Assembly (NCBI GenBank): GCA_977020255.1
Contig: CDROCS010000122.1
Location: 496,001-560,000 of the forward strand
Length of the DNA: 64,000 nt
Reading direction: 5' to 3'
Origin: Obrimoposthia wandeli
Lineage: Eukaryota
Position 1 is the first letter of the stretch. Every line of letters begins with the position of its first letter. A program made the translations under genes and the position numbers. Of the stretch, positions 32,782-35,439 are shown in pieces. Under the pieces are notes generated by a model. That model was not told the origin of the DNA. It searched no databases and saw only the letters and a program-made list of their open reading frames with translations.

Positions 32782-33023
32782 AATAACATTAACTCAACCA
32801 GCATGTATCTAGCTATAGTGGTACGTAGGTACATGTCTATATTGATACTGATAACTTTATCGAATTAACCTTTCGATCTCGAGACAGTTTTCGTCGCAAA
32901 ACATTGTAAAGTGTTACAACTCATGTCGTTAGATTAACGCGTTTTGATCTTTCCGATAAAGCCAAAATATGCTGGCTGAGTTATCGCGCCCTATTCTTAG
33001 CGAAATAGAATAAGACGCTAACA

Positions 33024-33269
33024 TTACGTTATAAGTCTAGATTTAAATCTTCGTCTAAGGTTATAGACTTTACGTTCTGCTGGACTAGTCGTTAAGCCTA
33101 CCTTCATTCGACCATCTCTCTCGACACCAATATCTTTTAATACGTGGCGAGATAGGTGAGGTAAATTCGCTAAAATACGACGACGTTCATGACGAAATAC
33201 TTCGTGTTCACGATGGATGTCTAGACGAATAAGTAGAACTGCAAGGTGTAAATAAACTGATTGGCGCAT
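33024..33269 (-). CDS. DUF1127-like small basic protein (81 aa)
   Basis: LPHLSRHVLKDIGV matches the DUF1127 LxxHxLxDIG core; Arg-rich; GGAGAG SD before ATG at 33269. Confidence 0.7.
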   Translation of the reverse strand: MRQSVYLHLAVLLIRLDIHREHEVFRHERRRILANLPHLSRHVLKDIGVERDGRMKVGLTTSPAERKVYNLRRRFKSRLIT

Positions 33270-33384
33270 AAGAATGCTCTCCATTTAATGATATTAAAGG
33301 AGGGATACAGATATGCTGACGAGAATTTGCTTACAACAGCTCACCGCGACAGATATCCGCGGCCCATAGACACAGCGGATGCTG

Positions 33385-33456
33385 TTAGTATTTAGTGAAT
33401 TGCTGAGTGGCATCAACAGCAGGACGCGTACAATTCATCATAGTGATAGTGTTCAT
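33385..33456 (-). CDS. putative leader peptide/uORF MNTITMMNCTRPAVDATQQFTKY (23 aa)
   Basis: CAGGAGG SD 5 nt before ATG; in-frame TAA; downstream of candidate promoter at 33500-33527. Confidence 0.65.
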   Translation of the reverse strand: MNTITMMNCTRPAVDATQQFTKY

Positions 33457-33499
33457 ATGTACCTCCTGAAGTGACGTTATAGTGTTGAAATGAGTGTTA

Positions 33500-33527
33500 A
33501 TTTTAACTAATAACCATTATTTAACAA
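33500..33527 (-). promoter_or_regulatory. candidate sigma-70 promoter for uORF-DUF1127 unit
   Basis: TTGTTA-N16-TAAAAT. Confidence 0.45.
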
Positions 33528-33723
33528 GCATATATTTCATCCAAAATGCATAACAAAGTTATATGCTATAACTCTTTTTTATACCTTTTAAATATATTGC
33601 AAAATTTCTTAATATCCGTGAACTAATAGCATAAGTGACCACTTTTTAATCACCCTGAAATTCACTATTTCCTGTCTTTATATCTGCTTATACTCATACC
33701 GTTCCTATGTTATTAACGAGCAT

Positions 33724-33749
33724 AAAAAACGCTATATAAGCGTTTTTTT
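33724..33749 (-). terminator. vpsR terminator
   Basis: AAAAAACGCT-atata-AGCGTTTTTTT. Confidence 0.7.
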
Positions 33750-33768
33750 ACAACAATGGGTTCATCGA

Positions 33769-35100
33769 TTAGTTACCACGGAAGTGTCTTGGAGAAGGCA
33801 CTAAATCATGTTTGTTCAGCAATCTATACATGGTTGCACGAGAAACCCCTAGCTCACGAGCTGCTGCTGAAATTTGACCTTTATTATTCTCTATCACAGT
33901 CAACAGTGCCCCACGCTCCGATTCTTCTCTGATCGTTTTTAAGCTTTGCTTATCGTCATTTAGCCGCGGTATATCAAGATGATCCGCTTCAATACTTTTA
34001 TCTTCAGCTAACAGTACAGCACGTTTTATTTGGCTAATTAATTCTCGTACATTCCCTGGCCAAGGGTATGTAGTTAACATTTTTTGTGCTTCATCCGAAA
34101 AGTGCTTTGCAACACTATTGTATTGCCTCGCAAATTTCAGTAATAAAAACTCAGCAAGTAAGCTGATATCACTGCCTCGTTCTCGTAATGAAGGCACAAC
34201 CAGCGTAACAACATTTAAACGATATAAAAGATCTTGTCTTAATTTACCCTCTGCGACGAGCTGCTCTATAGGGTAACTGGTTGAAACAATAATCCTAATT
34301 TCTGACGTTATCTTTTCACCCGCAGGGGTCGTAAACGTGTCGTCATTAATAAACTGTAACAGCTCTTGTTGTCTCTGATCTGATAACGCTGAAATTTCAT
34401 CAAGGTATAGCACGCCTTTATCTGCTAAAGCAAAGCAGCAAGGAGAAGAGTGCATATCACAATGTTGTTCATTTACACTGTCACAAAACCAATCAGCTGT
34501 AACCGTTTCACAACTAATTCTAACAAAGGCATTATTGGCTCTCGTCGATGCTTGATGAACAGCACGCGCAACTAGCTCTTTTCCTGTACCCATTTCACCT
34601 TCAATAAAGACAGACACATCATTTGCTGCAATACGCTGTACTTGATGGCGAAGCTTTTTCATGACTTCTGTTGTACCTTGCAAACCTTGTTGGCCGAAGC
34701 GCCCTAAATCAGGCCATACTTTGCGTTCTAGCTGTAACATTCCCAGTTGATGACCAATGGTTTCTTGCAACTGAGCAACAGGCGTAGGTGAAGTGAAGTA
34801 ATCAATACAGAAGCTAGCAATGAATTGGCAAATGGCGTCTGAAGCAAGCTGCTCTTCTCGTACAACAGCTAACCATCGCACTTGTTTATTACGATTAACC
34901 AGCGTTGCGATACCATTGATGCTGAAATCATCTTTACTGAGATCGACAACACCAATGCAAGGACCAATATCCAATAATAAAGACTCAGCGGCTCTTAGGT
35001 CATAACAACAATGACATACCCAGCCAGCTTGCTCTAAAGAGGGCAACCATGATTGAGAACTACCGCCAAAGACCACTAACGCTTCTGACATTACTCCCAT
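33769..35100 (-). CDS. vpsR: atypical NtrC-family regulator, VpsR/CpsR orthologue
   Basis: N-terminus GPCIGVVDLS...DAICQFIASFCIDYFT...IGHQLGML resembles V. cholerae VpsR; no GAFTGA; HTH ELGVSRATMYRLLNKH; lies near lysS and tas; ATG at 35100 after AGGAGG. Confidence 0.85.
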   Translation of the reverse strand: MGVMSEALVVFGGSSQSWLPSLEQAGWVCHCCYDLRAAESLLLDIGPCIGVVDLSKDDFSINGIATLVNRNKQVRWLAVVREEQLASDAICQFIASFCIDYFTSPTPVAQLQETIGHQLGMLQLERKVWPDLGRFGQQGLQGTTEVMKKLRHQVQRIAANDVSVFIEGEMGTGKELVARAVHQASTRANNAFVRISCETVTADWFCDSVNEQHCDMHSSPCCFALADKGVLYLDEISALSDQRQQELLQFINDDTFTTPAGEKITSEIRIIVSTSYPIEQLVAEGKLRQDLLYRLNVVTLVVPSLRERGSDISLLAEFLLLKFARQYNSVAKHFSDEAQKMLTTYPWPGNVRELISQIKRAVLLAEDKSIEADHLDIPRLNDDKQSLKTIREESERGALLTVIENNKGQISAAARELGVSRATMYRLLNKHDLVPSPRHFRGN

Positions 35101-35439
35101 ATTTCCCCCTCCTTTCATCATTAAGCCTTTAAATAATAAACAATAACCATGTAACATAATGGCCAAAATATGGAGCACGAGCGACAATAACATTCAGTTA
35201 TATTGTTTGATGATATATGCCACAACAAACCCATTGCAACTTGTTTACTATAAATATGGATTGTACTCATGTTTTTTCTAAAAAAAGATGCCTCTAAGCC
35301 ATGGATAATGCGGCTAACATAGCAAAAAGAGAAAATAATTTAATCATGAAAGATTCTAATTAATATAAATAAAACCTGATCATTACCAAAAGTAAAATTA
35401 ATAATATAAAGAATTGTAGTAGGTAAAAATCATAAAACG

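Follow-up and report, generated by a model that had tools for sequence, protein, structure and literature searches.

A real, conserved, and unannotated RNA leader, which is not in Rfam, precedes the DUF1127-type gene analyzed in this study. The leader contains a short upstream open reading frame (uORF) with its own Shine-Dalgarno sequence (SD1), a structured spacer, and a hairpin that sequesters the Shine-Dalgarno sequence of the downstream gene (SD2). The conserved uORF beside a conserved structured spacer and a sequestered SD makes a cis-regulatory leader of the DUF1127-type gene the best reading of these sequences. Judged from the sequences, the leader is a genus-restricted (Photobacterium) form of uORF-dependent leader control. 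The uORF would either raise or lower expression of the DUF1127-type gene, and sensing of translation status is the most likely function of the leader, at about even odds. The window is the whole 64-kb stretch that was analyzed (Obrimoposthia wandeli assembly GCA_977020255.1, contig CDROCS010000122.1, 496,001-560,000). All features are carried on its minus strand, with the uORF at 33456-33385, the 115-nt spacer, and an 81-aa ORF at 33269-33024. The initial annotation of the window had described this region as a uORF-coupled switch, and every motif that it listed was found in place on the minus strand.

DUF1127 proteins are widespread, small, and basic, and links have been reported to RNA binding, to phosphate signalling, and, for a Vibrio, to biofilm formation. 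The 81-aa basic protein of the window (33024-33269, minus strand) was assigned, from a weak Pfam match and family matches, as a probable divergent member of DUF1127 (YjiS-like). It scores 21.3 bits against the DUF1127 Pfam model (PF06568), for which the gathering score is 23.3, and 9 of the 22 members of its family match DUF1127 at E<=0.01, the best at 1.7e-6. A profile word search gave 21 clusters of 81-82 aa, and every cluster with a named source is from Photobacterium. No match was found by tblastn of the protein against plasmids or by a profile search against the PDB. The AlphaFold model of the protein has a mean pLDDT of 63 and is too poor for a fold search.

Upstream of the leader, a gene for a VpsR-type regulator (Pfam VpsR domain, 2.4e-50) ends at 33769 on the minus strand. 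It is followed by a terminator-like hairpin, a 300-nt intergenic region, and then the uORF. The longest vpsR ORF (33769-35193, minus strand) has 474 codons, but the homologues have 442-445 residues, and translation probably starts at the Met near 35100 or 35091. Judged by VpsR (94-95% identity), the closest genomes are those of Photobacterium frigidiphilum, P. indicum, and P. profundum. In the loci fetched, the uORF-DUF1127 unit is always convergent to an aldo/keto reductase-DUF6482-mutH block. The upstream neighbor differs: some clades have vpsR at this place, the halotolerans clade has a LysR gene, and P. lipolyticum has hyp genes. In the halotolerans clade (L004, L007, and L013), vpsR and the uORF are separated by an inserted BTP-domain gene and the LysR-family regulator gene, and in P. 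lipolyticum (L009) the unit comes after hypD, hypE, and hupE. These varying neighbors indicate that the unit is linked to the aldo/keto reductase side and not to vpsR.

Copies of the leader were gathered in three ways: via VpsR, by exact protein look-ups, and by a metagenome pattern scan for the invariant RNA core. In total, 27 full copies from about a dozen clades were recovered, and the main protein in them is 50-60% identical to that of the window. The uORF, the RNA core, and the SD2 hairpin recur in every locus fetched, so the conservation of uORF and hairpins on which the initial annotation had staked its reading is borne out. The uORF is absent from the gene-caller output in these loci. 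The fold energy of the whole leader is unremarkable when the single sequence of the window is compared with shuffles (z -0.65), and the case therefore rests on comparison. When the window is compared with P. frigidiphilum, 2.6% of spacer sites and 18.5% of the third codon positions of the gene differ; conservation of the spacer RNA exceeds that of the synonymous sites of the gene about 7 times. A covariance model (R1) was built from 22 sequences. It gives one match per locus and a single match in the 64-kb window, with 105.6 bits, which delimits the conserved spacer RNA at 33264-33390 (minus strand). A 20-base core pattern matches 41 metagenome contigs; 4 are genuine, all with uORF and gene, and the remaining 37 are high-GC chance matches. 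Across the metagenome scan, the 64-kb window, and the loci, the RNA core was always found with the uORF and the DUF1127 gene and never elsewhere. An Rfam scan (E<=10) returned only chance-level matches (E 2.5-6), all outside the leader. In two metagenome contigs (L028 and L055), the DUF1127-type ORF ends after 40 codons with the uORF and spacer intact; these are either an assembly error or a decaying copy.

The spacer begins with hairpin P1 (ACAGC-atcc-GCTGT, 33372-33385, minus strand), whose first base is the last base of the uORF stop. P1 is supported by covariation: 99% of cells are paired, and the stem is closed by C-G in 16 sequences but by U-A in 6 others, across two clades. The initial annotation had given the AACAGC at the uORF stop three possible partners. 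The partner just downstream is conserved as P1, and the other two are not generally kept. The distal GCTGTTG reads GCAGTTG in the nearest relatives and is thus specific to the window. The GCTGTT within the uORF can form 6 bp only in the clade of the window and in P. lipolyticum, and 4 bp elsewhere.

P1 is followed by a long rod, P3. Its nearly invariant 5' strand (33349-33365) also serves as the 5' arm and loop of an alternative hairpin, P2, whose 3' arm (CGCGGT) lies at 33343-33348. The apical part of the rod (33320-33342) is variable in length, is shorter in the clade of the window, and contains a GGCU/AGCC helix (P4) in most clades. The 3' strand of P3, TCAGCATATCTGTATCCC, lies at 33302-33319, and its last bases overlap the anti-SD2 block (33299-33304); all of these elements are on the minus strand. 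In the single-sequence folds from which P3 was derived, GGGCCGCGGAUAY-CUGU pairs with the block just 5' of the anti-SD. P3 and the short GC hairpin P2 are mutually exclusive. The CCGCG/CGCGG hairpin of the initial annotation, around 33362-33343, is present, and P2 is possible in every sequence. The capture of TATCC by GGATA, also proposed there, turned out to be part of the extended helix P3, which shows compensatory changes. In 15 of 17 sequences, P3 is the more stable state, with a margin of 2-9 kcal/mol over P2.

The pairs of the spacer differ in how informative they are. P2 is 100% paired in 22 sequences with 6 of its 7 pairs never varying; as a proven helix it was dropped, since this variation is uninformative. 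P4 is 86% paired and shows one-sided changes only. In the closest clade, one P3 pair is A-U in the window, G-U in L001, and G-C in L002, L003, and L020, and this clade has almost no other change in the leader. Three further P3 pairs alternate between GU and GC. When P1, P3, P4, and the SD2 hairpin are taken jointly, 93% of cells pair, against 38-60% with slid partners, in an alignment for pair counts that was fitted to the structure and has the clade of the window off register by two columns. The joint covariation score is 0.171 against 0.138 +/- 0.005, and none of 500 shuffles reaches 0.171. Two-sided changes occur at 3 pairs, a number not separable from chance (138 of 500 shuffles). The rod 5' strand and the blocks CUGUCGCGG and GUCCCUCC are invariant beyond what pairing requires. 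Binding sites for CsrA were considered and rejected, the GGA of the P2 loop being GGG in the nearest relatives.

Contiguous with the P3 rod is the SD2 hairpin (33279-33302, minus strand), in which the anti-SD CTCC (33302-33299) pairs with the GGAG (33282-33279) of the DUF1127-type gene. This hairpin had been recognized in the initial annotation, and it is kept in all clades. It is 98-99% paired across clades, with variable inner AU-rich pairs, and its dG is -4 to -7 kcal/mol at 37 C. An RNA thermometer was rejected: at 37 C, the cold-adapted clade has one of the most stable SD2 hairpins (-6.8 kcal/mol), exceeded only by that of L016.

These features of the spacer bear on a different explanation, in which a protein or a small ligand would recognize the rod as a sequence-specific operator and the uORF would be accessory, for example as ribosome cover or for stability. 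The invariance of the rod 5' strand, CUGUCGCGG, and GUCCCUCC well past the needs of pairing speaks for such an operator, as do the constant availability of both P2 and P3, the contiguity of SD2 with the rod, and the occurrence of the RNA only with a DUF1127-type gene. The most attractive candidate ligand is the arginine-rich DUF1127 protein itself, which is presumably RNA-binding and would act by autoregulation; a Rhodobacter DUF1127 protein is reported to bind RNA (PMC8034643). However, no known riboswitch matches, and an operator leaves the strict keeping of the uORF, the strong SD, and the stop position unexplained. We consider this explanation unlikely. A narrower version, in which the rod with its exclusive P2 and P3 folds is the cognate RNA operator of the DUF1127 protein and the uORF sets the folding co-transcriptionally, is quite improbable. 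If it were true, a DUF1127 protein would for the first time have a defined RNA target through which it regulates itself, and the leader would represent a novel type of kinetic switch timed by ribosomes. Control by uORFs might then be a general theme of DUF1127 genes that evolved independently in alpha- and gammaproteobacteria.

In the uORF of the window, SD1 (CAGGAGG, 33462-33468, minus strand) is followed by 23 codons at 33385-33456, and the TAA stop overlaps the first base of P1. The pair of a CAGGAGG SD and a 23-codon ORF had been noted in the initial annotation. A uORF of 21-26 codons with an ATG and an invariant GGAGG, placed 5-8 nt before the ATG, is present in 27/27 full copies, which encode 21 distinct peptides. 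There are four or more length classes, differing by whole codons. Despite these differences, the stop (TAA or TGA) falls on the first P1 base in nine clades, and the keeping of this position across four uORF lengths indicates that the indels are in frame. In the halotolerans clade, an insertion of 26-41 nt parts the stop from P1, and a hairpin specific to this clade has the stop within its 5' arm or directly beside it. The SD, the frame conservation, and the in-frame indels strongly suggest that the uORF is translated. A second mini-ORF, starting from the invariant ATG of AAATGGG (MGRG...), was rejected, as loop indels of -1/+2 nt break its frame and one clade has ACG.

The peptide appears to be weakly constrained. 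Over pooled independent pairs, the uORF has a pN/pS of 0.69 and the gene one of 0.36, and the changes in the uORF within clades are mostly non-synonymous, so this test of coding constraint went against the peptide sensing that the initial annotation had envisaged. The N- and C-terminal thirds vary freely between clades. The middle reads Cys-x-Arg-Pro-Ala-Gly/Val-Asp in several clades, and Cys-Thr-Cys-Ser-Ser/Ala-Gly-Asp or Tyr/His-Thr-Ser/Cys-Ser-Phe-Gly-Asp/Glu in others. The CGT CCT GCT codons show zero synonymous changes across seven clades. This invariance, even at synonymous sites, points to a constraint on the RNA.

A partner for this stretch is SD1 itself. The anti-SD1 block in uORF codons 11-15 (CGT CCT GCT GTT G, 33414-33426, minus strand) is predicted to form a duplex with SD1 and its 5' flank, named hairpin P0, at -8 to -15 kcal/mol. 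The P0 duplex has a mean z of -2.4 against shuffled blocks, and in most clades the block takes rank 2-4 when about 80 windows of the transcript are compared. The pairing is kept by differing sequences in two clade groups: CAGGA with UCCUG, and ACCGGA with UUCGGU or UCCGGU. Its register shifts between the clade groups, and the pairing was judged by duplex energies. A long-range pairing of SD1 with anti-SD2, proposed by RNAalifold, was discarded; it has almost no ensemble probability in 12/13 sequences, and its flanking complementarity is not conserved.

P0 also bears on whether the uORF encodes a functional micro-protein that is co-expressed with DUF1127, with the spacer as a processing or stability element of a small operon. 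Such a role would fit the length kept at 21-26 residues, the strong translation signals, and the full bicistronic contig in RNA libraries. The mostly conserved Cys, the Gly-Asp/Glu pair, and the C-terminal His or Gln that recur across clades would also fit. These residues have to be set against a pN/pS of 0.69, within-clade changes that mostly alter residues, and terminal thirds that differ freely between clades. The conserved middle is explained by RNA constraint because it is synonymously invariant and pairs with SD1. A micro-protein is a distinctly improbable account of the uORF.

The coupling of the uORF to SD2 in the preferred cis-regulatory reading was modelled, at equilibrium only, by masking ribosome-sized stretches at the initiation site, with the P site at codons 8-19, or at the stop codon, and by masking the entire uORF. 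The initial annotation had assumed refolding that depends on ribosome position. In this equilibrium modelling, no ribosome position released SD2, which stays 0.77-1.0 paired in all clades. A kinetic, co-transcriptional coupling of the uORF to SD2 is possible. An amino-acid- or peptide-specific stalling sensor (e.g., for sulfur amino acids), whose stalled ribosome refolds the spacer and frees SD2, would suit the Met-Met, Cys, and several Thr of the window peptide, the Cys-x-Arg-Pro-Ala-Gly/Val common to several clades, and the alternative pairings around the uORF stop, but it is very doubtful: SD2 is paired at every modelled ribosome position, the Met/Cys/Thr bias that had suggested sulfur limitation is not conserved across clades (neither the Met-Met pair nor the Thr pattern), four clades swap Arg-Pro-Ala for Cys-Ser-Ser/Ala or Ser-Ser-Phe, the leader has no regulatory-codon run and no terminator, and the partner GCTGTTG is not conserved.

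The promoter proposed in the initial annotation is of sigma-70 type (33500-33527, minus strand), with a -35 TTGTTA, a 16-nt spacer, and a -10 TAAAAT, and it was recovered by a scan at 33527-33500. Both hexamers are conserved across all clades. The transcription start site would lie near 33493. It would be followed by a pyrimidine-rich, G-poor 5' UTR before SD1 (33469-33493, minus strand), whose composition (C 0.19-0.42, G 0-0.13) is maintained in 15/15 representatives while the sequence itself is variable. No intrinsic terminator was found in the leader by a scan of the minus strand.

The uORF, the spacer, and the gene occur as one contig in RNA libraries. A 507-nt contig in a 5-megabase sediment metatranscriptome spans exactly 32974-33480, from just before SD1 to just past the 3' hairpin that follows the gene. 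RNA-library contigs start at 33480 and 33500; they show presence and not RNA ends or strand, and DNA carry-over is possible. In the same library, the promoter region is bare, and vpsR lies on a separate, thinner contig. The marine-sediment metatranscriptomes X1-X4, which are very small (2-8 million letters), cover a third of 32900-33800. These contigs suggest that the leader-DUF1127 transcript can be abundant in situ.

In the proposed mechanism, a two-cistron transcript of about 520 nt would be made from the conserved sigma-70 promoter, beginning with the G-poor 5' UTR. The very strong SD1 would load the uORF, and its translation would count more than its peptide. SD1 would be either occupied by a ribosome or shut by codons 11-15 through P0. 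The uORF stop sits at the foot of P1, ahead of the P3 rod, whose 5' strand can refold into P2, and the weak hairpin stacked on the rod would hold SD2. The leader would then report the translation status of the cell, and uORF translation would decide the yield of the downstream gene product. The structured leader may be terminated early or degraded when free of ribosomes, access to SD2 may be altered, or both routes may operate. For sORF26-duf1127_1 of Sinorhizobium meliloti, a logic of this kind has been demonstrated by experiment.

To our knowledge, the regulation of DUF1127 genes is known in one case only. The initial annotation had called the switch undescribed, and here it is overtaken by the uORF-dependent DUF1127 leader of Sinorhizobium meliloti, published in 2025 (PMC12218461), although the RNA differs. 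This system, sORF26-duf1127_1, is the closest known to the Photobacterium leader. The S. meliloti DUF1127 gene most induced by tetracycline is controlled by a 29-aa uORF (sORF26) in a 279-nt leader (PMC12218461). Attenuation requires translation of the uORF, and the RNA of codons 3-10 matters, not the peptide (PMC12218461). The element is masked by a hairpin of the uORF ribosome binding site with codons 3-10, attenuation further requires a C-rich stretch beyond the stop, and termination is presumed to be Rho-dependent (PMC12218461). The leader was proposed to sense how efficiently translation runs and how available ribosomes are (Kothe et al. 2025, RNA Biol, PMC12218461).

The two systems have in common a short uORF with strong translation signals about 30 nt from the transcription start site, a long leader, and a DUF1127 gene of the larger type. 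In both, the RNA of the uORF would count for more than the peptide, and a translation-sensing role is proposed. As in S. meliloti, the uORF and the DUF1127 gene would share one transcript; both are present in all copies and on one RNA-library contig, with translation of the uORF as the expected step. Similarly, the hairpin of the ribosome binding site with uORF codons has its counterpart in P0, at -8 to -15 kcal/mol. The differences lie in the host, an alphaproteobacterium with a leader of 279 nt, and in the composition of the RNA. In S. meliloti, codons 3-10 and the 45 nt that follow the stop are both C-rich and are taken as a split Rho site. In the Photobacterium leader, the early codons are not C-rich and G-poor (C 0.10-0.30 and G 0.17-0.23 in the first ten codons), and the 45 nt after the uORF stop are not C-rich (C 0.22-0.31, G 0.27-0.38), except in the halotolerans clade. 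Unlike S. meliloti, Photobacterium has a highly conserved, GC-balanced rod and a sequestered downstream SD. The likeness is one of architecture.

Other uORF-controlled systems were also considered. In the Rho-dependent E. coli toiL-topAI and tnaC-tnaA systems, a short uORF likewise lies in a long leader, and its ribosome occupancy decides downstream expression. These systems use defined stalling (by antibiotics or tryptophan) together with rut sites or exposure of the ribosome binding site by refolding. In the Photobacterium leader, no conserved arrest motif, no rut-like tract after the uORF, and no SD2-exposing refolding were found. Nascent-peptide arrest of the SecM, TnaC, or RAPP type is not indicated, as the central motif is not universal and pN/pS is 0.69. 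Translation attenuation of the erm/cat type likewise combines a leader ORF with a subsequent hairpin in which the regulated gene's SD is sequestered, and there the stalled ribosome physically melts the SD-holding helix. The Photobacterium SD2 hairpin, in contrast, lies about 85 nt past the uORF stop and is unaffected by the modelled ribosome. The trpL, hisL, and thrL attenuators similarly encode a short leader peptide behind a strong SD, with hairpins downstream. Unlike these, the Photobacterium leader has no regulatory-codon run, no terminator with a U tract, and no downstream biosynthetic operon.

A second uORF leader, apparently unrelated in sequence, in another proteobacterial class would suggest that the coupling of DUF1127 to translation status is a recurrent solution. 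The leader also offers a compact 130-nt RNA with clear mutational targets for studying how uORF translation is coupled to folding.

Two further elements lie beyond the promoter and beyond the gene. A near-palindrome, AGCATATAAC-ttt-GTTATGCAT, occupies 33546-33567 (minus strand), some 20-40 nt ahead of the -35. Other clades have GCATAAA-N5-TTTATGC or at least a TTTTTAT tract at this position. The near-palindrome is a candidate regulator site or UP element. At the other end, a conserved, GC-rich hairpin of 12 bp without a U tract (32986-33018, minus strand) lies 5 nt past the DUF1127 stop. It is found in all clades with many compensatory changes, the 507-nt contig ends 12 nt beyond it, and it may be a 3' stabilizer or a protein-binding site. 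Beyond it, a second, weaker hairpin with a U-rich tail lies at 32960-32977. Alphaproteobacterial sRNAs encoded beside DUF1127 genes carry a CCUCCUCCC motif. In the L016 and L018 clades, the stem of the 3' hairpin consists of CCUCCCUCC or CUUCCCCCC paired with its complement, and these stem sequences recall the motif of those sRNAs.
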